In this document: piece by piece, positions 8,246 to 51,099 of the stretch
How the letters are laid out: each line of letters starts with the position of its first letter
How positions within the stretch are numbered: the first letter of the stretch is position 1
DNA from: Leidyana gryllorum EB-2025a
Taxonomy: Eukaryota > Protista > Apicomplexa
Length of the DNA stretch: 64,000 bases
Reading direction: 5' to 3'
Assembly (NCBI GenBank): GCA_048772705.1
Contig: JBLWGC010000047.1
Span: 151,243 to 215,242, forward strand
Program-made: the position numbers and the translations under genes
The notes under the pieces: generated by a model
Database searches by the model: none
What the model saw: only the letters and a program-made list of their open reading frames with translations
What the model was told of the DNA's origin: nothing

Positions 8246-11213
8246 CTAACTCACAAATAGTGGTGTCATGACCTGCAGTGTATGATGGGGGCAGCTTGGA
8301 TGGGGGGCTTAACTCACCAGTGTTACGGTCGCTACCAACTTGATCAGCACATGCACAGAAGGGCCTGCTGTATCCTTGCACGGATCACCCACGGTATCGC
8401 CAACCTGTTGTCCAACATTGTTTCTGACAGATCGGATGATCAAACTCACCACAGCGGCTTTGTGGGCTTCTGAGCCTTTTCCGCCCAGTACGCCAGTCTC
8501 GATGTACTTTTTAGCATTGTCCCATGCACCTCCTCCGTTGTTCAGGAAGAGTGCCATTAAGATTCCAGTGGAAGTGGCGAACATCATGAAGGCTCCCAAA
8601 GCCTCAACCCCCAAGAGAGGATTCCCACGCGCCGCGCCAATGAGTCTGCGGAAGTGTATACGACCTAAACACGGTCTCTTACTTGAAGCAAAGGCCCACA
8701 ACTATGGGTGAAAGGGCAGCCACGAGGCCAGGGAGTATCATTTGTCGAGTGGCTGCTTCACTCACAATCTTGACGCATTTCCGGTAGTCGGGTAGCTCTT
8801 GGAAAGTCATTATATTCGGCCGTTCGCGGAATTGCCGTCTGACCTCAGCAACAACATCGCCAGCGGTGGTTCCCACCGCGTTCATAGCCATTGCAGAGAA
8901 GAGGAAGATCGTTGCAGCTCCCAGCAGACCGCCCACAAACACATCGGGGCTCGTAATGTCTACAATCTTGAACGGCTTCTTTACAAAGATAGACACTTCA
9001 TCAAGGAAGGCCGAGAATAGCAAGAAGCTGGCCAACGCAGCTGTCCCCACGGAGAAGCCTTTGGTGTTGGCTTTGGTGACGTTGCCCACTGCGTCCAATC
9101 TATCAGTGATTTCCCGAGTGGTACCATCCTAATGTGATGGGAGATGTGTTTCCGACAGGCGCACACACGCGTTTGTGGTCCTTACCGTTCCAGCAGATGT
9201 CATTTCCACAATGCCTCCAGCATTGTCGGCTATTGGGCCGAATGAAGACATGGACAGTACATATACAGCTGTGGACAGCATCCCCATGGTAGCAACGGCT
9301 GTTCCAAAGAGACCGCCGAGAGCGGGCGATTCTGGTGAAATTCCGCTTACCACACCTGTGGTTGTGGATTATTCGTTGGTGGTGGGGGTTGCGGCATTAT
9401 AGTTTTACCTTGGTGATATGCGAAGACGATAGCGATCGAGATCGCGACAACTGGGATGGCGGTACTTTCCAAGCCAACGGACAGGCCGGCAATAATATTG
9501 GTGGCTGGTCCTGAATTACTTGCGGTGGCAATACGTTGTACTTTGGAGTAGTTGTAGTCCGTATAGTACTGGGTGGCGAAGAGGAAGACGAGGGCGCAGA
9601 GGATACCTGAGAGGCCACAGAGGGCGAATCCTCTCCAGGCGTGAGGTGCGTCGGCAGGGTTGAGGAAGAGGTAGCACAGACAAGTGAAGGAGATAGCTCC
9701 TGCAACGCAGGTATAGAAATAGACGGATATCATGTCTTTGAGCGGGTTTTGTGCGCGACGACTGTTTGCGGGTGATCCATCTGCGCCGAGTGGCAAGAGT
9801 GAGCGGTTTCCACGGCCACCCCCAGGGACCCGGCCGACCGCAAAAACTGCAATAGTGGATATTAGCAGGTCGACTGAATGAACGGCGAGAGGAAAGAGGA
9901 CAAAGCCCGCGGCCGTGCGTTCCGGGAGTTTGGCTTCAGATGCCAGCGCACTGCCGAGGATCATGGCTGCCAGCATTTCTGCGGCCAATGACTCAAAGAC
10001 ATCAGCGCACTGTCCGGCACAGTCACCAACGTTGTCGCCCACCAAATCAGCAATGACAGCGGGGTTGCGGTAGTCATCCTCGGGTATTCCGGCTTCAACT
10101 TTACCGACGAGATCGGCTCCGACGTCGGCTGCTTTGGTATAGATTCCGCCTCCCAGTTGAGCGAACATGGCGACCAGACTGGCGCCAAAGCCGAAGCCGA
10201 CGAGGAGAAGTGGTAACTTGAGGGTGGGTACCCCTGGGAATAAGAGGTGGCAGGTGAGCATCATCATAGCCAATCCCCCAACAGCCAGCGCTACATTGAT
10301 GATTGAGCTGAAAGCTCCGCCCCTGAAACAGATTCTCAAGGCTTCCTCGTAGGTTTTGTGAGCGGCTGCAGCAACGCGGCAGTTCGCGCGTACTGAAACC
10401 CAAACTCCGCTGTAGCCCGACAGGGCGGAAGCAAAGGCCCCCATTAGGAATGTGATGGAGGATACAAAAGCGAACTGGACGGGCGATATGCCCTCTCTGA
10501 TATCCTGAGGTAAAGAATCGGCCGATCGTACAGCGTAGCAGATGAAAAGGGCAATAGCGATGACCCCCGATATCTTGAGGATCGAGGAGTTCTGAGTGGC
10601 ATAGAAACCTTCGGCACCTTCTTGAATGGCTGTAGCTATCTCGACGGTGTGATCGTCCCCTTCGTCTTGAGCCATTATCCAAGACAACATCCAGAAGGAT
10701 ATCACACAGAAGATTATAGCTACCGTCAGAGCAGCAAAGTTGTATACAACGAAACCCTCATTAACGGTCAAAGACACAATCAGAAGTAACCCCAGAAGAC
10801 CAGCGATCAGCGCCGAAGTTGATATAATCCGGGTACTCGGACTCAGTCGTCGGAACTCATTCACAGCCATTTCAAAACACCTGATCACCCAGCCGGCCAT
10901 ATTCCAAATCTCTCACCACCACTCACTGATTCGCGATTCCACCTGTCATTGTCATTGTCCTCGTCCGCTTTCCTTTCCGGGACGAAGGGACGCCTCCTCC
11001 AGCAGACGTGGCGTACTCTCCTCCCCCGTTGCCAGACGATGACGACGATGGGTCCAACCGTAAAGAGTCATGATGCTGTCCTATCAGAGTCGAAAAACTG
11101 CCTTGGCTATGGATAGGCGCAGACGGAATCGGCACCGGAATGCCTCCTCCATTCGTCATCAGACCTCCTTCAGCCGGACTGAAGCGCTGAGATGCTCCAG
11201 CCGGTGGTATCAT
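8246..11213 (-). CDS. Membrane H+-translocating pyrophosphatase, K+-independent (type II / VP2-like)
   Basis: [69 protein letters not shown]; Lys in GNVTKA is the established K+-independence determinant; several short introns. Confidence 0.95.
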
Positions 11214-15271: not shown

Positions 15272-17992
15272 TCATACATCATCTTCTACCGCCTCTCCTT
15301 CATCAGCACTAATGTCTTCAGATGACTCCCGTGATTCCAACTCCTCCTCCACCTCTTCCACGCCATCCTCTTCCACCGGACTTCTCGTGATCCTGATCTC
15401 ATAGAAGCTCTGTCCATCCAAAAATACTTCCTCATCGCCTTCGGCTTCCACTCCATCCTCCAACTCTATGCTGGGCGCAGCCGCGCCGCTCAGCAACAAA
15501 GCATCGTACTCCATATCCTGTTTGTCCTCCCAATATGCTCGACCCGCTCCACAATCTATCGACAATATATATGTGGCTAGCCAATCCCTTCTCACCTAAG
15601 ACAACTGTGCAAGTTGCTGTCGCTGACTCCTCCCCATCATAGGCTGTCACCAACAGCTCTCGCCGAGCTACTGGGGAAACAGCACAAGAGTGCGATACTT
15701 CAAATAGTAGAGATCTGGTATCAGCATCTTGGATGTGAATCTGGAGGGGATCACCATCCGGATCTGACGCTGTGAACAAATCATTGTTGAACTTCTTTGT
15801 GTCAACATCAATGTACACACGATCTCGGAATTCATCATACTTCATCACATTTATGCCCGGATCTGCAGTTTTGCAATGGATCGTGGGTTTGTGGTTCTCC
15901 AAACAATCTGCAGCAAGTCAGTCCCATTGCCAATCAATAGATGGAAGTCAACTCACTGATAGTCATGGGGCATGTGGTGAAAGTCACCCCATCCGGATTC
16001 CACCCTGCGGCCATAACATCCAAGGTCTTGGTGCCGGGTGTGTCGCACGTATATGAAAAGCTTAACGGGTCCACTACTTTGGTCTGGAAGACTAACCCAA
16101 CTGACCGAGTTGCTTCCACTGGCTCCACGGCAAAGAGCATGCCGAAGGGCTGGAGTGGAAGGGGTCTGTGAACAATCAGATCCATGGTCAACGGGAGGCA
16201 TCGGATCGACGTTGAGGGAATTGCCTTGATGATATCGGTGTAGTCACGCTTGGGTGACTCAGCTTGCGTGTCCTTGACTTCCTTCTCTTCTACTCCATCG
16301 GCTTTAGGCGTCGAAGACGTGGTGCTGCTGGTCGTGGTAGGCGTGGTAGTAGTTGTGGTTGTGGTTGTGGTCGAAGTCGTTGTTGTCGTGGGAGTTGTGA
16401 ACGTAGTTATACCGTTGCCAATGTCAACGATTGTGGGAATGGGAGTAGGTGGCACCAATGCTTGATACATACGTTGGATGTCTGTGCGGCTGAGCGCCGG
16501 GTTCGAAGCATCCTCCGTTGGATGAGCCAAGGGAGCCTTCTCAACGATCCATGCGTCAGGGTTCACGTGGGCGGGTGGCAACTCCAGAAACGCACTGTCC
16601 TTCCTTATGGCTGGGTAAGGCGTCTCGACGAAGGACCCCTTATTGTCGACTAGTTGGGGTCTATATTTGAAGGGCCTTTCGGGTCCTTGGGCATCCGCCC
16701 ACCATTTCTGGAAGGTCATGTCGCTCAGAGTGGCCTGCTCAGGCTGCAAAGTCTTCATTCGATCCATGTACATTTGGACCAACTGTTTCAACTCTGGGGG
16801 TTCAGCTTCCCCAAAGTTCAACGCCAACCGACTGGCAACTCTGGCTGCTTCGTCGTAAAGTCCGTCCTCTTCAAACCTCCGACCAGGTAACGAAGGATGA
16901 ATGACGCCTTGCTCAACATCATGAGCCCCCTCGCCACGGATCCGATTCAACCTTGGTTCGAAGTAATCAACCATTTCAGCCTCCCCGTTAGCCACTGGTA
17001 GACCATATGGTGCGCTGGCGGTGGGCCATTGAGCGTTAATCCCAATTCTGGGCTGGCCCACCAGAATCTGAGCTTGATCAACGGTGCTTGCAGCGGTAGA
17101 AACGGGAATCTGACCGATTGGGACATGAACCCCAGAATATGCGTTGACCCTATTGAGTGTAGGGGTGGGTGCGATGCAACCTGGGTGATTCATCTATGTA
17201 GGGAGTTCGATTTGGACGGACTCACTGATCGAAGTCTTGCACAGACTGGTTCCTTTGCTCAGCAACCCTCCCGAGGTGTCAGTGACAAATACCTTGAACT
17301 TCAAATTAAAGACACCGGGAGCATCACACGAGAACTGAAAGGTACCTGGAACCTGTGTGCGGAGCGTGTTGGATGAGTATGCAGCATTGTTCATTCACCT
17401 TCGATAGCGTTTGCAATTCCTTGACATGTATCAGTGCTGAGTCTGGATTCAATCCTTGAGGCAGGGTGACGTTAAAGATGTCGTTACTAAACCCATGGGC
17501 GTTGATGTTCAAAACCTCTCCGATGAACATATCGCGTTGGAAAGCCCGGCATGCCACGATGGGCTGTGCTGGGAATAGTGAAGCAGGTAAGACGTGCGCC
17601 GCTGCATTCAGGAATTTTCCTTCCGCAGATCGGCTCTCAGGTGCTGCCGCAACTGGCAAAGTGAGTTTGGGACCAGCATGGATCTGTTCAGATCGGTGTT
17701 GTGCGTGTGCTTGCACGTGTTCCACAGAGTGAATATTTGCGTCAAAGCCTGGTGGTAAGGTTCTTGGGTTGCAGGTCTTGATTGAGAGCAATTGGATGCC
17801 ATTCAAGAAGTTGGGCCGAGACAATCCGGTCAGGGCGCCAGCAAACGGAGCAGAGCACTGTTCGTCTCTGCTACAATCACTATCAGCGAAGCACATCCGT
17901 CCTAGAATGCTTTGAAATGGACCCTTGGCATCTTCGTTCGCACGCACAAAGAGCTGCAAGAGCCCAGATAGCCATAATGCAGCCGCCAGCAT
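15272..17992 (-). CDS. Secreted protein: signal peptide, three Cys-containing HYR/Ig-like repeats, Thr-rich mucin stalk, acidic tail
   Basis: MLAAALWLSGLLQLFVRA signal; ORFs 17324-18022, 17194-17394, 15934-17193, 15432-15902, 15272-15595 linked by short introns; repeats share IxC...[FY]SC..PG...V.A/TD...C...[IV]; poly-Thr at ~16310-16410. Confidence 0.75.
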
Positions 17993-18063
17993 GTGTCGCC
18001 CCGGGAGCGAACGTGTTTGCAAGAGACGCTAACAAACGCAATCAGACCTTACACCTACTTTGA

Positions 18064-20545
18064 ATGAGGCGCCGTATCACGTCGGCTCTATTAACGCTGG
18101 CACTATGTGGTTGTGTGACGAGTGCACGAAGATTGAGATCACATCGCGCTTGGTTGGCGAGGTACGGGCAGCCACTAACGCTGGAGCCAGCTGCGTTCTG
18201 CGATATGCGGGGTGTTACTATTGCTGTTCCCACCACAACCATTCATACGAGGGAGTCGCCTGCCTCGGTGGCTTGGGGAAGTTTGGCAGGGTCCCGCCAG
18301 GTTCAACTTGGGCCTCGAGGTCCCGAGTGCGCTGCTCGCCTCGAGCCGGGATTCTTCAGAAGGGAAGGGAATGACACGACCGTGGACGCATGGCTGGCCC
18401 GGGCAACTCATACGGGTTGTCAAGGGCACTCAGTTTATACCGCTGATTCTATTATCCATTCGAATAGATGGACAATCTCTTGGCCGGAGCGAAACAGCTC
18501 CACAGAGGGCGAACGAAGACCAAATCTCAATGTTCTCGTATCTTGCACATGCTCAGTTGAGACGGAGGAATGCAGTGCAAACGCTCGATGGGAGGATCCA
18601 ATTCTATCACCAGTTTTGGACGCGGACGGGTCCGAGAGTTTGATAGGGGGCTACAGTGTTAATTCGGCGGCTTTAGTGGGCCCTCATGCAGACGTCGACA
18701 TTTTGCCAGATCTTGAAAGGTAAGAGCTGCCATCGGAATCTTCATGATTGTTTGGCCAATAGTCGCTTCCATTTTGAAACCTACGGCCCACCTTCCGAGC
18801 ATTTATGGCCCTGGAAGTGTGACGCGTCAACGCCTGATGGACGGAGTCACCCTCTGTTGGTGGCGGGATGTCCTGTGTCGGACAAATTGGACTTTCAGGT
18901 GAGGGTATCTCCATATTGGGTTGTAAATGTTGGCTTGCAGACACATGCTGTGACTTTGCGAGGTCTATTTGGTCGCGAGCGGACGTTTTCGCAGTCGAAG
19001 GGCCATTTGGCCTTCAGTTTAAAGGCTGTGGGGTTCGAAGGAGCAGAATCTGCCTTGGTGATGGTGACGTGTGAGATGACGACTGCAGCATCTGCTCCCA
19101 AGTTGGAAGAGATCTGCCATGATCAGAAACTTCTTGTCCCATCACCCAGAGCAGTTGGGTTGGAGGGTGGCAATTCAAATCGTGCAAAAAATCCAGGTTC
19201 GTTGGTGGTCGGCGGACAAAGTGTGGAGTCAGTTGACTCTGCTGGCAGAGAGGGATCTGCTGAAGTTTTCAGACGATGGGAGAAGTCGTTGAAACGGGAG
19301 GGGAGAAAAGGTGCTCGACGGCGGAATGGTGGGGGCGTCGGCGATCCGGGCGCAGGTATGGAGGGAGGTGCCCCCCCGCGTAAGCTGTTGACCCAAAAGG
19401 AGGCTGAGGAGGAAGCAAGAAAGCGTTTCGATGCTATTTCGCACACAATCGACTTGCCCGATCTGACGGAGCATCTGGAGAGTATAGATTTCATGGACGA
19501 CGATTTGGATGACGAAACGATGATATTCTTCAATCCTGGAAGTGTCGAGAGCATGTTGCCGGAGCCGGTGGCACGTTACAAGCCTCCGGCTTTGCTTTCT
19601 GTGAAGAATGACTATGCTATTGACAATTTCGGGGTGACTTGGAATCGTGGTGTCAACAATCGTCAAACGGCTGTGAAGGTCGGGAACGATGCTGCTTGGG
19701 TTGGAGCGGATGTGGCTCTGCAACAGCGTCGGGCCACAGCGACAGTGGGATGGAAGGACTTCCACATGAATGCTCTCACAAGTTTGGAGCAGCAGGAGTT
19801 GGGTGTTGGGGTGAAGTACGGCAAGTATGGTGTGGCAGCAGTGCGGAACAACCAGGAAGATGCCACTTCGATAGAAGTGAACACACCGTATGTTGCGGTT
19901 GGTACTTTGGCGAACTTTTTGGATCGTAACTACGGACAGAAGATTCGCATAAAGGACTTTGAGATTGTTGGTCGTCACGATTTCAACGAGCACATCTACC
20001 AGGATCCTAACAAACTGGCATCAGAGTTTATGATCAGTTACAAAGATTATGGTGTTGCGGTGGGCAGCGATGTGGTTGATACTCGTTACGGTGTCAGCAT
20101 TGGTATCAAAGGGTATCAATTCAGTGTTCTTCGGGACTTTGATGAACGACAAACCGACTTTGTGGGAAATTTCGGAGACGGTTGGCAACTATATGTCAGC
20201 CAAGATGCTCCTGATCAATACTCCAAGTCGATGTTCGGTCGTGTCGGTTTCGGGAATTTGAAGAAAGCCTATGTGCTCGCTGGCGCTGGTGTGGGTGATG
20301 ACGGCATCCCAGAGTTCAATGCACGGTACCACGGGAAACGTGCTGCTATTGTCATGGATCTTGAAGGATCCGGTGTTGGTGATAGAACTTTGATCACCGG
20401 ATTCTCGTTCGGGAAGTTTACTTACGTTTGGAATAGCAAGTTGGCACTGGACAACTTGCGAGTACCCCTTATGGTCGGGGTTGAGCCGTTACAGGTCAAG
20501 AACCTTCTCACCCCTGGATCGCTCCCGACTCCACAGCACTTCTAA
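18064..20545 (+). CDS. Secreted protein with ZP-like N-terminal module and C-terminal beta-hairpin repeat region
   Basis: Signal MRRRITSALLTLALCGCVTSA; intron 18720-18762 fuses ORFs 18064-18723 and 18686-20545 in frame; probable in-frame intron 18899-18940. Gene model confident, domain calls tentative. Confidence 0.75.
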
Positions 20546-20578: not shown

Positions 20579-22002
20579 ATGAACTCTTTGCACTCTTCTC
20601 CATCATTTTCCCAACTTAACCCCTCCAATCAATGCCAGGATCCACCTTCAACCTCTTATCAACCACAACTCCAGGATCCGTAAGTGGCAATCTAATAGCC
20701 ACCTCATAATAATTAAATCAACAGTCTAATTGAATGGGTCGGTACCGCTATAAGAAGTCAATGGTCCACTGGTGCCACACCGGGCGACCTCTACTCTGTA
20801 ATGGGTAACATCGAAAGATGCGTAGAAGAACACAGGCGCAACCCAGAGTCCAGTCACATATCCAGACACGCGCCCAAGAACACCAAGTTCTGGACTCCCC
20901 TTCCTATGCGGGAGGCCTTCATGAGAATGGATGCCAAATACAAGATAAGTCAACGACGCTGGATTCCGCCCAGCAACCACGAGATCCGCCAAACCCTAAA
21001 TCTGGCACAAGTTTTGGTCACCTGTAAGAATCTACGGCTGATCACATTCGATGGGGATGAAACCTTATATCCAAACGGTGCTAATTTTGAGGACCCCGAA
21101 TTGGCTAACCTTATCATCAAATTGTTGCGGAACGACGTCCACGTCGCTCTGGTCACTGCTGCGGGATACGGGCAAGACCCCGAGCATTACGAGGTGCGCC
21201 TCGGTATATTGCTAACCGCCCTCAAAGACGCCAATCTGGGACCCGAGAAATTGGGCCAATTCATGGTATTCGGAGGAGAGGCTAATTACTTGTTCAGGTG
21301 AGTGCTAGACTTCTGTCTGCCTTCGCTACTGATGTATTTCGCCAGACTTGGTGAAGATTGCGGTCTTCACTGTGTTCCATATGACGAATGGCAACGTCAC
21401 TCCCCCATCGTTCTCACCAAGGAGAAGGATCTGGAAGAAGCCACACGGCTGCTCAATACAGCCGAGGCGACTCTGCGAGATGCTGTAACAGAGCTTGGAC
21501 TGCGTGCGCGAGTTATCCGCAAGGAAAGGGCCGTAGGAATTGTCCCAGGCGGACTGCAAGGCGTCCTGAGGGTCCCAACTGGATCGGGCTCCAAGTCCAT
21601 CAGGTCAGAAATTCTTGAGGAAGCTGTGGCACGGGTTCGCGAAGCGGTCAATCGAATTGGTAAGTTCCATAGTTCACATGGCTTGGAGTACACTCAAAAT
21701 GACCATCATCAGATCCGAAGATCCCCTACTGCGCTTTCAATGGAGGCTCGGATGTCTGGGTCGATGTCGGGAATAAGGCAATGGCGTTGGAAGTATTACA
21801 AAGCATATTAAATATTCATCCTTCAGAGTGCTTGCATCTAGGTGACCAGTTCACACAATCAGGAAACGACATCACCGTGCGCCAAAAATCGCCATGTATC
21901 TGGGTGATTTCCCCAACTGAAACCAAAGCTGTTCTTCGACGCTTGATAAAAGGAGGTGATATGGAGCAGCAAGTAGATAGTGACGGAAACGAAAATTGGT
22001 GA
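20579..22002 (+). CDS. ISN1: IMP-specific 5'-nucleotidase (HAD family)
   Basis: FWTPLPMREAF...ISQRRWIPPSNHEIRQTLNLAQ, HAD motif LITFDGDETLY, VTAAGY, GGEANY, FNGGSDVWVDVGNK, LHLGDQF...GND. Confidence 0.92.
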
Positions 22003-24533: not shown

Positions 24534-26343
24534 ATGGCTGCCACGGCTGCGCCAGTGACCGCCTTTATGGCGGATAGAGAGAGTGGAGAGGATGTTCGTT
24601 CCCAGAATGGTGAGTGTATTGGTGTGGCGTTAGCGTGACATGATGTTGCAGTGACTGCGGCTAACACGCTTGCGAATATTCTGAAGAGTTCATTGGGTCC
24701 CCAGGGTTTGGACAAGATGCTGGTGGACGGTATCGGCGAGATGACGATTACGAACGACGGTGCAACCATTTTGAAGCAGTTGGAGGTTCAGCACCCTGCT
24801 GCTAAGGTGTTGGTTGATCTGAGTGACTTGCAAGATCAGGAAGTAGGTGATGGAACGACTACCGTGGTGTTGTTGGCTGCTGAGCTGTTGAAGAGGGGCA
24901 ACGCTTTGATTCAACAGGGTGTGCATCCAACGTGGGTGGTGACAGCATTCAAGTCGGCAGCCAAAGAGGCGGTGAAGTACATTCAGTCGAATTTGACGAT
25001 GCGATTGGATCAGAATGCGGATCCGGAATTACTGAAGAACATTGCTCGTACGTCTTTGAGTTCCAAGTTGATTGGCGGGGAGGACGATTTTTTCGCCAAT
25101 CTGGTGTGCGAGGCTGTGCCAAAAGTGCGTTTCGAGGATGAGAAGACAGGCAAAGTGAAGTATCCGGTTAAATCCATAAACATTCTCAAGACTCACGGGA
25201 AGAGTACTCGGGAATCTATGGTTGTGGACGGTTTTGCTCTGAGTCACATTGGGCGAGCCGCTCAAGGGATGCCGATGAGAGTGGAGAAGGCGAAGATTGC
25301 CATTCTCGAGTTTCCTCTGAAACAATATAGAGCACAACTAGGCGTCCAAATATTGGTCAAGGAGGCTGAGGAATTGGAGAAAATCCGTCTCAAGGAGAAG
25401 GATATCTGCAAGGACAGAGTGGAGAAGATATTGGCGGCTGGTGCCAACGTTATCCTCACTTGTGAGGGCATTGATGATATGGCTCTCAAGTACTTTGTCG
25501 AAGCCAAAGCTCTGGCTGTCCGACGTGTGCCCCGCGCTGATCTCAGGAGAATCGCTCGGGCCACTAACGCTCGTCCGGTGATTACTATGGCCAAACCAGA
25601 TGGTGACGAGGAGTACTTTGATCCCGCCTGGTTGGGTGAGGCTGACGAAGTGTGCGAGGAGAGAGTCGGCGATTGGGATTACATCTTTGTGAAAGGATGC
25701 CAAGGTGGCCGAGCTGCGTCCATTATCCTGAGAGGAGCCAATGACTACTTGGTGGACGAGGTCGACCGCTGCGTGCACGATGCCATCTGCACCGTCAGTC
25801 GCACACTCGAGTCCAACCAAGTGTGTCCCGGTGGTGGTGCCGTGGAGACTGCGTTATCGGTCTATCTAGAGGACTTCGCCCGTACAATGGTGAGTTTGTT
25901 TGGTGGTCAAGTGTTCTCACATCGTGTGTCTGTGTGTGTGTCTTAGGGTTCCAAGGGGCAAGTGGCTGTTGCCGAGTTTGCTGAAGCTCTGAACATCATT
26001 CCGAAGACTTTGGCTGTGAATGCGGCTAAGGACGCTACTGAGCTGTTGGCTAAACTGCGTGCTGCTCACTGGAGGTCTCAGAAACAAGATTTCGCTGAGG
26101 AAGACGTTCAGTACAAGTGGTATGGATTGGACTTGGTGAATGGAACTGTTCGGAACAATCTGAAGGCCGGCGTTCTGGAGCCGGCTATGATTAAAATCAA
26201 AGCTATCCGGTAAGTAATGTGATGGTTGGGGTCACACGACTGCAATTTTTGAAATCAGGTTTGCGACCGAGGCTGCTGTGACCATCCTGAGGGTGGACGA
26301 CATTATCCGGTGTCATCCGGAGGAGGATATGGGTCAGCAGTGA
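24534..26343 (+). CDS. TCP1: T-complex protein 1 subunit alpha (CCT1)
   Basis: SGEDVRSQNV.A, KSSLGPQGLDKMLVD, TITNDGATIL, EVGDGTTTVV, GGGAVE, final FATEAAVTILRVDD; three short introns. Confidence 0.97.
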
Positions 26344-30723: not shown

Positions 30724-33700
30724 TCATAAGGCTATGTTGGCGGCGAAAGGACTGAATGACGCTGGCGTATTCGGCAACATGGGAGCCATCCCAATACTCA
30801 TTAGTCCCGATACTGCGTGTGTGGAATGGGACCCCATAGGTTAAAGCAACTTTAGAAAACCCTCACCGAGCTCATTCGCAGAATGCTTATCTTTGCGCTC
30901 GCTCTGACTCTGAGTCTGCTTCGCAACCTCCTTCTCCAACTTGTCCAGCCTCTGACGCAAAGTGCCTACGCTCTGAATCATAAACGGCATCAACTCGTCT
31001 TGGTACCCAGCCAGCCATGCCAACTCCATGGCCACCTCTGGCCGCACCAACGGATTGCACACCTGCACAACGCAACAAATCAAGTCATTCAGTCAGTCAG
31101 TCATTCAGTCAGTCAGTCAGTCAACCAGTCAACCCCCAAACTCTCTCCCCAATCCTACCTGCAGACAGGCAGCAAAGTGCTGCGGGCTCTTGAGCTCATC
31201 AACAAAGTACTGCAACAGCGCTTCAGCGATCGCCGGATCACCCGAAGTACGAGCGATCGCCATCGCCTGCTCGTACTGATGGAACTTCTTTGCTAACTCG
31301 ATCGCGTGAGTATACTTCCCATTCTTCTCGTACAACGACAAAGCCAATTGCTTCATCTCAATCAACTGCATAACAATGTGACGACCGCAACAATGACCAC
31401 CGAGTGACAAACAATGACCACCGAATGACAATGACAGAACCCCAACAGCAACCGGAACAATTACAGAACCCCAACAGCAACCGGAACAATGACAGAACCC
31501 CAATAACAGCCGACATATAGATCATAACAATCCACAGCAAACCGAAAACATCGAACATCGATCGAACCACCGACCAAGTAACTCACCTCGTGTTTCTCGA
31601 GCTTCGCAGCCAATTCTGGTTGATCAAAGTTGTCATAAGCCGAAATACTCTTCCGTAGCTTCTCAACGTCCTTTCTGTCCAGATACAGCTCGTGCAACGC
31701 GTCATTCACAATAGTCGTGTGCTCGTTCGCACGCGCCTGCTCGTCCTCCAGCCAGCTCGCCACCAATGCCATCGGACTCAAATTAATTCGAGACGCCTCC
31801 AATGACAAACGATGACTCTTGATCGTTTGGATCACTCGCAGGTGTTCGATCTGACCACTCAGAGCCGACAGTAACTGATTCAGCATCGTCGGATGCTCCT
31901 CCAAGTACAGCACCAATGCTTTGTACAGAATGTCCAGATTCGTCACTTTTTGGAGAATAGACAGGAACTGCTCGTGCTCCCAAGCGATACTGCTGTGGTT
32001 CAGAATCACACTGGCCGCCTGGTCGTACTCGTTGTACGACAGATACAACAACACCTCTGCTTTCCACAGCTTCTCGGCCTCACAAACTTTGATCAGTTTA
32101 GGCACATTCAGCCGCCCAGCCGTCACCACCGGAGCACTCTTGAGGAAGTCCAACAACTGCTCGGGTTTGTACTTGGCGTACACAATACCCATCTCTGTAT
32201 ACAGGCCAATGTTACCCTTCCCTGTGGCCACACCCGCCTCCAAGAACTCCAACAGCTCACTCGAGTACCCAGCCGACTCGTAAGCGTTGATCAGCCGCTC
32301 CAAATGATCCGAGTTGTTGATAACGTTCAGACCAGCCGAATGGGCAATCTTCAACTGACCATTAGCCACACTCGCCAGGGCCACCTCAGTCCAGGACTTG
32401 GCACTCCCAGCTCGCTTGGCACTCTCATAAGCCGCGTTGTACTCACCCAACTTGATCAGACACAGAGTCAACTTAGTGTGGTTAGGCACCTTGGCATAGA
32501 AAACTTTCGCCGCCTTGTAACTGTTCGTGGCCCTCTCCACATCGCAGTCAGCCTCGGCTGCCAAACCCTCTTCGTACAACCGATCACCAATCATCTGAGT
32601 GTTGGCTGTATGGGCCCCGACCAAGAAGGTTTCCAGAGGACTCCACTGCCCAGTCCGGGCCAAACAGTACGCCAACTCGGAGTCCACGTCTCCCATTGAG
32701 CCAACTCGTTGAGCTCGCAGCTTCCGCAGAAACTCAGCGAGTTCCGAGAACTGTTTCGCTTGTTTGGCACATTGGATCACCCGTTTGTACTCAACGCACT
32801 TCTCAGCTTTGCCGTAAAACAACATTGCTTTCACCACCCATTCGCCTGCAGCAGTCTCCTCTCCGGCTGCCAGTCTCTCTTCGGCCTTGTCCAGCTCTGC
32901 GAGGGCCAGAGACTGCCATACAGTGGTATCCTTGGCCTTCTCGGCATAGGCCTCGGCTTGGCTGAAGTCCTGCATCTTGTACAACAGAATGTCCAGTGCC
33001 TTCTCGTTCATGTTGAACTTTTTGTACACCATCAGTGCTTCTTCGTACAACTTGAACTCCTCACTCGTGGCCACAGCGGCAACTTGGTGGGGGTCAAACG
33101 CGTCCAACCGGTTGATATAATCCTTAACCTTCTCAGGCTTGGCCGACATGGCAGTCAACAAGAGCAAATTCTGGAACGCCGACGAGTTACTCAGAGTCTC
33201 GCCATCCAGTCCGGAACCGCTGAAAGTCACAGTCTTCTGGAGAACAATGCGTTCGAGCAGTTCCAATAGTTCACTCTCCAACTTGGCGTCCACGAAGGCT
33301 TTGACTACGCACGAGATCTCATCCACAGCAGAAGCTTCGGACAAAGCGGTGGCAGTAATCTGATCGACCAGTTGACGACGGTATTCCTTGTTGTCGTCGC
33401 TCAACACCTGAGCCCACACCTCAGGACTCTTGCGCTGGATCAGATACTTGGCCTGAATTCTGAACAGACCATTGCGATTGGTGATGCTGATCAACTCTGC
33501 GTCGCATTGGCCTCGCATATACGCGATGACGGCCATATGGGGGTCTTTGTTCTCGCAGTATTGACCAATAGTTCGGGGGTCATAGTTCAGATTGGTGCTC
33601 AGGAACTTCTCGGGGTCGCGGTTGGTGTCGATGTACACTTTGGCAACGGCATTGTTCAGAACAGCATCGGTGAGACCCTCTTCGATCCGTTGTTCCATCC

Positions 33701-36700
33701 AGGGCAGAATGAGACTCAGACGGCCGCGGTTCTCCATCTCGGGGATCAGAGGTTCCAGTGGGCACTGTCCACGCACTCTATCCAACAAGTCGGTGACCAC
33801 CGACTCACTGCAGCCCAAATCCAGAAGAGTAATGATAATGGTACCAGCAGCTCTGGAATTGACTTTGGTAACATAGATCTCCAGATAGTTCATCAGATCA
33901 TTGCGGTAGAGGAACTCGGTCAACTCGTCGATGTGGCCGTGTTTGTCGTAGACATATATGAGAGGTTTTGGCTCTTCAACAACGGCTCGGCAGTTCTTCA
34001 GAAACTCCATAACACGGATGGGGTCGTAATAGACGGATTCACGGACAACGCGCTCGACCTCCTGATAGTTCTCCAGCTTCATTGCCGCCTCAATGTACTT
34101 GAAGTGGACATCCGGGTCGTTACTGAAGGCCATAATGCTTCCGAGGAAGTAGTACAACCCTTCAGTGGAGTTAACGTTCTCAAACAGATTGATGAGATTC
34201 TGAATTCCCAGCCGGTTGTGGTATTTGATACACACTTGGACGACACTCTGCAGGTTCCCCCGATTCTGACGCAACATGTCACTCAGAATCTCAATGACAG
34301 TGTTCTCGGAACTCGTCACCAACAGCTTCTCGCAGAAGCCCAACAGCCAATCGAGATTCATTTGTGTTCCGCAACGAATCATCACACGCTTGATATCATT
34401 GATATCGGTGTAATGCTCAAGGGCTCTTCTGTAAAGTCCCGCCTTCTCACACAGCTGGGCAACTCGGAGTCTATCGTAGTGCGTGAACTGCTCCGATTGG
34501 AACAAGAGCTCGGCTCCGTTCTGACTGCTGCCAGGCCCCGTCAGGTTGATCTCAAACAGACGGGTTTGCAGACTCGCGTGCTCCGGCTTGTCACTTTTGA
34601 GCGTGTCGACCAAGATGCCAGTGATCTCAGGTACCTTGCCAGCACCAACAAAAACATCAATGGCTGAGTTGATATCCATAAGTGGTGGCTCATTGGCCAG
34701 AAGACTGCGAGCAAAGTTGACCGCTCCCATAGGATCAATCGTCAGCATCGATCTCAACAGGAAGCTAAAGTCAGCCGAGTACTTCTTCTTCTTCACGTAA
34801 GTCAGGATTTCTTGGAACATACTTTTCTCCACCAAGAACTGGATCACTTTAGCGTGACAGTTTGCACGACTGTAAATCCGGAGGGCCATCTGTTCATCTA
34901 AACTTCGGCATAAATCTCCCAATTGCTCTGAACATTCCAGAGCGTCGTCGTCCAACCATTTTCCAACCAGCTCGGCACGATGTTGCGCCACCACGGGACG
35001 CATCAATTCAAGGGATTCATACCCGCTCAATTTAACCCCCAATTCAAGGAGATAATTGAAGTATTGAACAATGATCGATGACTGACCGGGAGTCACAGGC
35101 GCATTCTTGATCTGCGCAAACACATTGGGGTTGCGCAAGGCATTGCCTTTGCTCAAAGCTGCGACCCGGGCAGCAGCGGTCCATTTCTGCTGCTGCACAA
35201 GGGTACGGAACAGCTTGGTGGTGTAGTCATCGGCTACTGGATAGCAGTAACGCTGAGCCAGAGACAAGGCGACGTCCACACCCAATGTGGCTTGCACGTG
35301 ACTGATCAATGTATTTTCATTCACCGTTACGGATATTATCGCTCCTTTCCGATTCACCAGCAATATTCCACCCGAGCGCTTGTTAGCGCAACACAGGAAC
35401 ACACTGTCCTGAGACACGCGTTCGCACGCGATTTGACGGCCGGTCTTGGCATCGAATATCATTGCGTAACCCGCTTTAGTCGCTGTGTATATGACACCAT
35501 GGCGGCTCGACAACTGAAATTGAGGTGACGTAGACTCGATGAGGCGCAGTACATCATATTGAGTAACTCACATGTTGTGCGATCGGCAGATCATTCTGTT
35601 GATCGGGGGGGTAAGAGAACTCCGAGGTGATTTTGAAGGGTGTAGGACGGCCTTCACCCCGCTGGGAGTAGATATCCATGACGTAGAGCTTGTTGACACC
35701 GGCTTTGCGTTCACAGAAGGTGAAGACTTTGAGTGGTTCGGCCTCGGGATCATCAAGCTGCGGGATGAAAGCAGATTAGTGATGAGGTGACGGGGGTTGG
35801 AGACTTACATTGATGGATCCAAAACAGCCAGAATGGCCCTCGAGGAATTGTTGTAGGCGGCGTTGGACAGAGTACAATTGAAGGCAGCCGATGATGCTTT
35901 TTCTTTCGCCTAGATATATACCGGCCAGAAGGCACCATTGTACATCGGCGGGTGAGGTTTCATTGTCGACAGTGTAGTTAATGATCTGTACGCCGACGTC
36001 GGCCATTTTTTCGCCGCGAGAGAACATGAGGATGGGTTCTTCGCAGCTCGATCCTGTGGCGGGTCCAAAGGCATCAGATCCTACATCGCCGCGTAAGAAC
36101 CAGTGGTAGACGCCAGTGCGAGTGATTATGACGAGGCAGCGCTGTGGGAGCCATCTCCAAAAGACGATTTCTTCGGAGAAGGTGTGATCGCCGAGGCGGG
36201 CTTTGGTGTCCAAGTCGAAGACCTGAACAAAGTGGCCTTCTCCATCGTCCAAAAGGCCTGCGGGAGGAGAGGGAATGAATGTTTGGAGAGGGAATGACTG
36301 TTTGGAGAGGGAATGAATGTTTGGAGGAGAGTGGGTCGGCTGACGACAACGGTGTGGGTGGGTACCGACCTCTCAAGGCGAGGATATTTTCATGGGGATT
36401 CTTCATGGCCCCCTCGGCCTTGCGGCTGATGCGTCGATCGACTTCAAAGTCTTCGACTATATCGACAATACCGACCTGTTTGGAGTTTGTTTGGGATTGG
36501 TTCAGGGCGGCTCGCGGTTTACCTGAGAGGCCTTATCTTTGTCGCCTGCGGCGGAGGCATCTTTGATACAGAGATATCGATCGCCTCCGAAGCAGGCTGT
36601 ATTGAACCGAAAGGCTTTCTCTTGGAAAGAGTATGGTGGCTCGCACAACTATGAGGAGTGATGGTTTATCAATACTCTCTGGGCATTACCTGTGCGAGGA

Positions 36701-49898: not shown

Positions 49899-50729
49899 CT
49901 ATTGTCCCATGTCGTCTTGTTGTTCCTGCTCGTTTTCTGAAGTATCCCGTGTACTGTCGTCGTCGTCGTGGCTCTGTGCTTCACCTTCTGTCTCGATTCC
50001 CATAATACCGTTCCAATCGATAAACTCTGTCACTATTTCGCAAATGTCGCCTTGATCGTCATAGCCCATATAGACTGGATAATAGCCATCTCCCCAGCCA
50101 CTGGCGAGGAAGGTGAAACGCAAACCGTCCGAGTTGGGCACTTCAACATTCGGCCAGTCTCCGCCCGATCTTTGATACAGAGGATTGGCTGCGAAATTCT
50201 CTTTCAACTTCTCCTCAAAGTAATCGTCGTGAACATTGTAGAACCCGTTCCTCCAGGGGCAATACATATCGCGCGTCTTGGCGTCCATCACACACGCCAG
50301 CCCAGCATCCACTCCGAACCCCCAGTATAAGTCTCCATCTTCCATGCCGTCCTCCAAAACAGCGCCCTCTGGGACGGCGATCTCCCAATACACTGCCGCC
50401 GTTGGCTTCACTTTCACCCGCGATGCGGCATATCTCATAATCGCCGGCCCATTCACCACCGCTATTTCGACCGGATGAGTTCCTGTTGGAACTCTTTGGG
50501 CAAACGGAGGGTCATCCTCGTCGACAGAGCAAAATGGATCTCCGGCAACGACCTTTCCTGTGGGAAAGTCGACCACTCCAGCCGGAATAATTACCATCTC
50601 GTCGCCCTCCTCATTGCCAGTTGGACCCGCTGTAAAATGCTTCGCAAACCCCTGGGCATAGCGAAGCCTCGGCCTCACACTTTCGAATTGACTCCACCAC
50701 TCAGGGGATGTCTCACTCTGGGTGGTCAT
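49899..50729 (-). CDS. DUF4241-type bacterial protein, intronless
   Basis: GVVDFPTGKVVAGDP, PFAQRVPTGTHPVEIAV, RYAASRV, WEIA, FGVDAGLACVMD, SGWGDGYYPVYMGYDDQGDICEIVTEF; ATG 50729. Confidence 0.85.
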   Translation of the reverse strand: MTTQSETSPEWWSQFESVRPRLRYAQGFAKHFTAGPTGNEEGDEMVIIPAGVVDFPTGKVVAGDPFCSVDEDDPPFAQRVPTGTHPVEIAVVNGPAIMRYAASRVKVKPTAAVYWEIAVPEGAVLEDGMEDGDLYWGFGVDAGLACVMDAKTRDMYCPWRNGFYNVHDDYFEEKLKENFAANPLYQRSGGDWPNVEVPNSDGLRFTFLASGWGDGYYPVYMGYDDQGDICEIVTEFIDWNGIMGIETEGEAQSHDDDDSTRDTSENEQEQQDDMGQ

Positions 50730-51099
50730 GAAAATTTTACTTTGCTGCCACTGTCTGTCACCCCCACCCCCACTGTTTGCCACACCAGTGCGTTTCCCAC
50801 GACGTCCTCAGAGAGTGTGTGTGTGTGTCCGCCCCCATTGCGATCCACTTTGCATTGTCAGCTCCAGCCAACCCCTCCTCTGAGCCCAGCCATCAGATCA
50901 CCCCTCGCAGCCGGGGGTAATGCCGTGATCCCTCTAAAGATCAGACACCGCACTTTGTGTATTCTGGGGCGCGACGATCCCCCCAGACAGTAGTGCTACA
51001 CCGACTCATTCAGACTGATTTGTCCCCCGACTTGCCCGCCCACCTTTCTCCAGAGCGCGCCCTGACGCATGTCATCTCGTTGACTGAGGAGGAGTCGAG

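Follow-up and report, generated by a model that had tools for sequence, protein, structure and literature searches.

A very probable zona pellucida module fused to an unclassified beta-meander in an alveolate gene family

The bipartite, eight-cysteine zona pellucida (ZP) module has been called a metazoan synapomorphy, and its choanoflagellate relatives are described as incomplete (PMC13361971, a 2026 review). A locus in the apicomplexan Leidyana gryllorum EB-2025a raises the question of whether a protist may carry the complete module, ZP-N followed by ZP-C, and from where such a gene would derive. The window, i.e., the whole stretch of 64,000 nucleotides analysed here, had been described in an earlier note as encoding this module at positions 18130-19125. 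The module is found in this span, but the gene extends to 20545 and includes a beta domain of about 280 residues that the note omitted. The features of the gene are as follows:

18064-20545, + strand: whole ZP gene, three exons (18064-18719, 18763-18898 and 18941-20545), 798 amino acids, supported by orthologues
18064-18126, + strand: signal-peptide-like N-terminus, with a basic start and a hydrophobic core (sequence, hydropathy)
18187-18591, + strand: ZP-N domain; the orthologue model fits the ZP-N of ZP1 and ZP3 with an rmsd of 2.4-2.5 A over 92-93 residues
18199, 18328, 18418 and 18544, + strand: ZP-N cysteines C1, C2, C3 and C4, with an extra pair at 18550 and 18571
18646-19117, + strand: ZP-C domain, encoded across all three exons; the orthologue model fits the ZP-C of betaglycan, ZP2 and uromodulin with an rmsd of 3.4-3.6 A over 109-113 residues
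18646-18675, + strand: first ZP-C strand (IHP position)
18720-18762, + strand: intron 1, 43 nt, GT-AG, same position in loci L008 and L009
18818, 18869, 19070 and 19115, + strand: ZP-C cysteines C5, C6 (in GCP), C7 and C8
18899-18940, + strand: intron 2, 42 nt, in frame, GT-AG, same position in L008 and L009
19292-19324, + strand: polybasic stretch KREGRKGARRR, found in close orthologues, not family-wide
19379-19390, + strand: RKLL, the form that the RRL/RxL motif of the family takes in this gene; a candidate protease site
19604-20443, + strand: 24-strand amphipathic antiparallel beta-meander, about 22 residues per hairpin, pLDDT 93, without a close structural match

The product thus begins with a signal peptide, continues through ZP-N and ZP-C to a linker that contains an RxL site, and ends in the beta-meander. 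Computationally, the secretion signal is recognised from a basic-hydrophobic-small pattern (best 11-mer hydropathy 2.4), and the segment is directly followed by an RRL tripeptide (18127-18135). No transmembrane or GPI anchor was found by hydropathy, the best hydrophobic 19-mer in exon 3 scoring 1.14. Both introns had been proposed earlier, and their GT-AG borders and their positions agree with the orthologous loci L008 and L009. Intron 2 must be spliced, because the L008 copy holds an in-frame stop inside it. In the intronless orthologues P0009 and P0046 the reading frame is continuous over both window junctions. The ZP-like motifs quoted in the note are all found where it placed them. Two details had to be revised: the N-terminal unit, described as having four cysteines, has six conserved ones (C46, C89, C119 and C161, plus C163 and C170), and the conserved basic element of the family is not KREGRKGARRR but R[RK]L/RML, represented in the window by RKLL at 19379.

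Window exons were searched separately, and the fold was predicted for the natural intronless orthologue P0009 (40% identical to window exon 1) rather than for the window protein. A match to PF00100, the Pfam family to which the earlier note had pointed, was not obtained with the window protein, which matched no Pfam family. Single exons gave nothing significant against Pfam and PDB sequences, ZP3 appearing at E = 1 only, and a PF00100 scan of the organism's own genome was silent, as was the positive control. Family members likewise stay under the gathering scores; the best PF00100 score was 21.3 bits vs 24.6, and the best score for ZP-N (PF23344), at E 0.037, was also below its gathering score. 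The Pfam cut-off, having been trained on animals, limits detection and does not serve as a biological criterion.

Three partly independent lines support homology to the animal module: a family profile, language-model features and a structure search with the orthologue. A profile built from a 44-row alignment of the ZP-like module (A7) matched three PDB sequences at E <10 and no others. Each bears the name uromodulin, one being the ZPD filament entry; E-values against the uromodulin/ZPD chains ranged from 6.8e-5 to 6.7e-4. In the alignment, all four cysteines of ZP-C are paired, as are the GCP position and the F-S-x-x-x-F strand; the C-G...Y-S-N stretch of ZP-N is included as well. When the module from Vitrella was used as a query against the language-model features of the ESM Atlas, all ten of the ten best named matches belonged to the ZP family or clan.

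The AlphaFold model of P0009, to which the window exons align in sequence, has a mean pLDDT of 78 and about 90 in the cores. ZP proteins occupied ranks 1-17 of the Foldseek search (best E 2.3e-6) and ranks 1-11 of VIA, a Foldseek-independent comparison with 48,161 chains (Z 7.0-8.7; top non-ZP chain Z 5.9). Residues 11-145 superpose on ZP-N chains and residues 151-290 on ZP-C chains, so that the bipartite order is kept. The ZP-N half fits ZP1, ZP2 and ZP3 with an rmsd of 2.4-3.5 A over 90-102 residues (Z 7.0-8.2), and the ZP-C half fits betaglycan, ZP2, uromodulin and GP2 with 3.4-3.9 A over 108-115 residues (Z 7.1-8.1), at 10-18% identity in the structural alignments. Such scores are modest alone, yet each half fits its proper ZP subdomain in the correct order, which argues for a ZP module. 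The structural comparison suggested in the note thus placed ZP proteins on top, and its reading of ZP-N plus ZP-C agrees with the profile, language-model and predicted-orthologue results. We consider it very likely that the window protein is homologous to the animal module in both halves.

Ten cysteines are nearly invariant in the family (29-34 rows), eight at canonical positions and two forming an extra pair that closes ZP-N. In the ZP-N Y-x-N strand, 23 of 33 rows have Tyr or Phe; the window gene and the orthologues nearest to it have His. The first ZP-C strand, at the position of the internal hydrophobic patch, features a conserved G-x-x-L/I; its function as a patch is putative. An EHP strand (strand G after the cleavage site) is not predicted in the P0009 linker, where pLDDT is under 50, and the family alignment holds no conserved linker motif specific to ZP-bearing members. 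The C-terminal tail was rejected as a candidate EHP, because members without the ZP part keep it. In animals, the EHP is not universal among ZP proteins (PMC7456536, PMC13361971).

The family was delimited by an exhaustive profile search of 1.84 billion representative sequences, which found it where word-index searches were insensitive and returned 85 proteins at E up to 0.001. Members occur in Vitrella brassicaformis (three paralogues), Gregarina, Blabericola, Rhytidocystis, Siedleckia, Cardiosporidium, Digyalum and Cryptosporidium, as well as in assemblies GCA_009768925.2 and GCA_002563875.1, which we take to be Cryptosporidium bovis and Besnoitia besnoiti, respectively. The occurrence in other alveolates that the note had asked about is thus documented for gregarines, Rhytidocystis, Cardiosporidium, Cryptosporidium, Digyalum and Vitrella. 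A signal peptide, a ZP-like module, a variable linker with RRL and a beta domain make up the common plan. In several members, the putative Besnoitia protein among them, the beta domain seems to stand without a ZP part, which makes the latter dispensable in some lineages. A meander without ZP was seen in a probable coccidian genome (P0071; L024:3001-5585).

A quick tree built from the C-terminal domain joins the window gene to Gregarina niphandrodes GNI_077960 (support 83) and a paralogue from the same genome to Blabericola (support 100), a placement that makes a eugregarine host likely. This paralogue (G000:C177, L006:4410-7023) encodes ZP, RRL and meander, and has one short intron after the signal peptide. 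GNI_077960 and the Vitrella proteins CEM09749.1 and CEM19602.1 are direct homologues that share the architecture, with about 40% identity in the meander, but the intron positions of the Vitrella members differ from those of the window gene.

The host itself is an alveolate, because the assembly (15.5 Mb, 237 contigs) contains 15 IMCp/alveolin matches over the cut-off, one of them on the window's contig; the ZP gene is therefore not a contaminant. Host contamination, which the note had also dismissed, is further ruled out by the alveolate family members and by the introns and synteny conserved in the orthologous loci. The note had left open an animal-derived or an anciently shared module. No animal ZP protein was recognised among the 85 matches at E up to 0.001, of which 20 are named and none of these is animal. 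A recent transfer from an animal host is unlikely for this reason and because the family reaches from Vitrella, with its paralogues, to Cryptosporidium, which leaves ancient sharing or a very old transfer. These computational results show that the ZP-meander gene is a native alveolate gene and that the family predates the apicomplexan/chrompodellid split.

The weakest matches of the profile search were large PAN-domain proteins of Cryptosporidium and Rhytidocystis, which constitute a sister family. Their module aligns with that of the window family over both halves (hhalign 98.1%, E 7.7e-14). In one of them, P0110 (L022:1877-8686), ZP-N (E 0.039) and ZP-C (E 0.005) are the sole Pfam families matched by the respective halves. 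The sister-family profile alone matched no ZP chains in the PDB. Residues 564-574 of P0110 are the peptide used to raise the cgd6_3730 antiserum (PMC8710574), and the gene adjoins pyrroline-5-carboxylate reductase, as cgd6_3730 does. The P0110 family thus includes C. parvum cgd6_3730, together with C. muris CMU_016990. The annotation of cgd6_3730 lists a signal peptide and peptidase S8/S53 but not the ZP module that follows its S8-like, mucin and PAN regions, and the module is likewise unmentioned in the cited papers on this gene (PMC8710574, PMC6877471). In its family, a hydrophobic C-terminal tail and S8-like, mucin and PAN domains take the place of the meander of the window family.

PAN followed by ZP is also the order in nematode and arthropod proteins of the NompA/NOAH type. 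The sister family resembles them in this architecture, and the shared arrangement may have arisen independently. In Digyalum oweni, P0068 combines a subtilase (PF00082, E 5e-6), a ZP-like region, two RRL sites and the meander in one chain, linking the ZP-meander and PAN plus ZP families, although the ZP-like region was read by eye and its alignment is poor. The window genome has a PAN plus ZP gene of the cgd6_3730 family (G000:C213, L019:3107-5977), which seems to end after ZP-N; the next gene lies 150 bp further on the opposite strand, and a standalone ZP-N is possible. A Cryptosporidium ZP plus meander gene, called as three pieces (L020:4358-7464), adjoins malic enzyme, as does C. parvum cgd5_760, its candidate orthologue; cgd5_760 is female-induced (log2FC 4.5; PMC6877471).

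Upstream of the ZP gene lies a divergent partner:

15272-17992, - strand: divergent partner gene, Cys-bounded beta-sandwich-like repeats and a Thr-rich stalk, secreted; low end approximate
17993-18063, no strand: spacer of 71 bp between the head-to-head start codons

The partner has a weak Big_9 match (E 0.11) and a DPDGD motif of cadherin/Big_9 type. The head-to-head pair is kept in three other genomes (L008, L009 and L026) but did not turn up at the Gregarina, Vitrella, Cryptosporidium or L021 loci; its retention suggests co-regulation in one gregarine clade. In L009, an extra one-repeat paralogue of the partner lies between the partner and the ZP gene. Directly downstream of the ZP gene, positions 20801-22002 (+) encode an ISN1 IMP-specific 5'-nucleotidase (PF06437, E 2e-41). 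A C2-domain gene found 3' of the ZP gene on the opposite strand at L009:7160-7630 and L021:4809-5333 is absent from the window. Housekeeping genes recognised by eye include a membrane H+-pyrophosphatase (9347-10900, -), a chaperonin CCT subunit (24651-25946, +) and the clathrin heavy chain (31461-35513, -). A 294-aa ORF at 49899-50783 (-) resembles a bacterial DUF4241-type protein, a possible horizontal acquisition. The segment 55455-63184 (+) consists of a tandem two-gene unit with ORFs of 242 aa and about 430 aa and a period of about 3.5 kb; a 228-aa ORF resembling a tandem-unit ORF follows the C177 paralogue, and the group looks like an expanded family of F-box/LRR type.

The motif R[RK]L/RML occurs in 21 of 26 linkers vs 3.9 expected from shuffles, often within a polybasic run, and is not the furin consensus RxK/RR. 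In Toxoplasma, the Golgi protease ASP5 cuts at RRL and prefers Arg in the middle position (PMC4764566); RKL and RML deviate from this strict specificity. Compared with animal ZP proteins (uromodulin, ZP3, ZPD, ZP2 and betaglycan; PF23344 plus PF00100), the window family has in common the signal peptide, the order of ZP-N and ZP-C, the eight cysteine positions, the GCP and F-S-F motifs, the predicted folds and a basic candidate processing site after ZP-C. It differs from them in the extra cysteine pair ending ZP-N, the absence of a recognisable EHP and of a transmembrane or GPI anchor, the meander of about 280 aa past the candidate cleavage site, RRL in place of the furin consensus, scores below the Pfam cut-offs, and its occurrence in alveolates.

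What such a protein may do is suggested by these features and by the sister family. We propose a secreted precursor in which a true bipartite ZP module is fused to an apicomplexan-lineage beta-meander. The precursor would be cut at RRL/RxL in the secretory route by an ASP5-type aspartyl or a subtilisin-type protease, the freed ZP part would polymerise into animal-like filaments, and the amphipathic sheet would bind lipid or pack with itself. Together with its divergent adhesin-like partner, the protein may add to the extracellular coat of sexual stages. The Digyalum chain, which unites an S8 peptidase with ZP and meander, favours this scheme. A sexual-stage role is inferred because cgd6_3730, in another organism, is female-induced: in sorted-stage RNA-seq, its mRNA averages 0.96 log2 CPM in asexual stages vs 10.2-10.3 in females, a log2FC of 9.25 or about 600-fold, and the authors placed the gene under oocyst resilience (PMC6877471). 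These stage data come from the sister family, not from the ZP-meander family, for which the expression stage would follow by analogy. Against the scheme stand the missing EHP strand and membrane anchor, the His in the ZP-N strand, the members that seem to lack a ZP part, the deviation of RKL and RML from strict ASP5 specificity, and one cgd6_3730 antiserum, which stained the sporozoite pellicle (PMC8710574). Taken as a whole, a protease-processed building block of the gamete, oocyst or gametocyst coat has about an even chance of being the right description.

Some animal ZP modules, such as those of endoglin and betaglycan, are not known to polymerise. By analogy, the module may be a true ZP that serves as a pro-domain, chaperone or ligand head for the meander or, in the sister family, for the subtilisin. 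Besides the lack of EHP and anchor, this would suit the better conservation of the meander, with a mean column identity of 35% vs 11% for the ZP part in the family alignments (the latter figure is lowered because fragment rows are included), the meanders that follow the same RRL site in proteins without detectable ZP, and the PAN gene of the window genome, which apparently ends after ZP-N. However, both halves and all eight cysteines are kept across deep splits, the module is present in two unrelated architectures, and its best structural matches include the filament-forming ZPD, ZP3 and uromodulin, though tied with betaglycan. We regard a non-polymerising module as the main rival, though an unlikely one.

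A ZP polymer or adhesin on motile or feeding stages (trophozoite or sporozoite), working in host attachment rather than in a cyst wall, appears improbable. The adhesin-like partner with its mucin stalk, the PAN domains of the sister family and the pellicle staining would fit; on the other hand, the cgd6_3730 transcript is abundant in females but at the floor in asexual stages, and Vitrella, where the family also occurs, is free-living and invades no animal cell.

The C-terminal domain invites a further reading, that of a secreted pore-former or membrane beta-barrel for which the ZP part would act as a targeting or latency domain. Its model contains 24 antiparallel strands (pLDDT 93), mostly amphipathic with one hydrophobic face (hydrophobic fraction about 0.5-0.9), barrels prevail among its VIA matches (Z up to 11.4), and a feature search gave a weak porin match. 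Against this, strands are only 7-9 residues long, searches of Pfam and PDB sequences returned no match and no porin, and the monomer model superposes on barrels over its full length with an rmsd of 10-12 A and a TM of at most 0.47; OspA and MORN sheets score like the barrels, also without global superposition. Porin identity is not supported on these grounds, and a pore-former is quite improbable. The domain shares a long antiparallel meander with the OspA single-layer sheet, MORN repeats and outer-membrane barrels, from which it differs by TM values under 0.5 and the absence of any sequence relation, and is best described as an amphipathic beta-meander outside existing classes.

Finally, that two generic Ig-like sandwiches converged on a ZP-like appearance is very improbable. 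In favour of such convergence, the window protein has no Pfam match, all members are under the gathering scores, and identities of 10-18% with Z about 8 are low, but the halves fit the corresponding ZP halves in the correct order, the motif alignment to uromodulin is independent of the structural model, the two halves of cgd6_3730 match ZP-N and ZP-C and nothing else in Pfam, and a clear score gap separates ZP from other Ig folds.

The module has been seen before by machine: UniRef auto-names the Vitrella proteins CEM09749.1 and CEM19602.1 'ZP domain-containing protein', so the domain was already caught by automatic annotation. Our literature searches, whose coverage left subscription journals largely outside, found no paper on a ZP module in protists or apicomplexans, and zona pellucida is absent from the text and supplements of the chromerid genome paper, which curated extracellular domains. 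New here are the unexpected range of the module and its partner domain, the 24-strand meander, which by itself constitutes an unclassified domain family.

Finding the complete module in Apicomplexa and in their free-living relatives leaves two histories: it arose far earlier and was then lost on a massive scale, or it passed between animals and alveolates in an ancient transfer. We tentatively entertain, while leaning against it, the larger idea that the polymerising ZP is not an animal invention: it would have been present in the free-living ancestor of apicomplexans, chrompodellids and squirmids, with ZP filaments in the female-gamete or oocyst coat, including that of Cryptosporidium, in parallel to the animal egg coat. 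Apicomplexan parasites may thus build cyst or gamete coats with a ZP module. Uncharacterised Cryptosporidium genes, one of them strongly female-induced, gain a structural reading, and oocyst wall assembly and gamete recognition become testable in a genetically tractable parasite.
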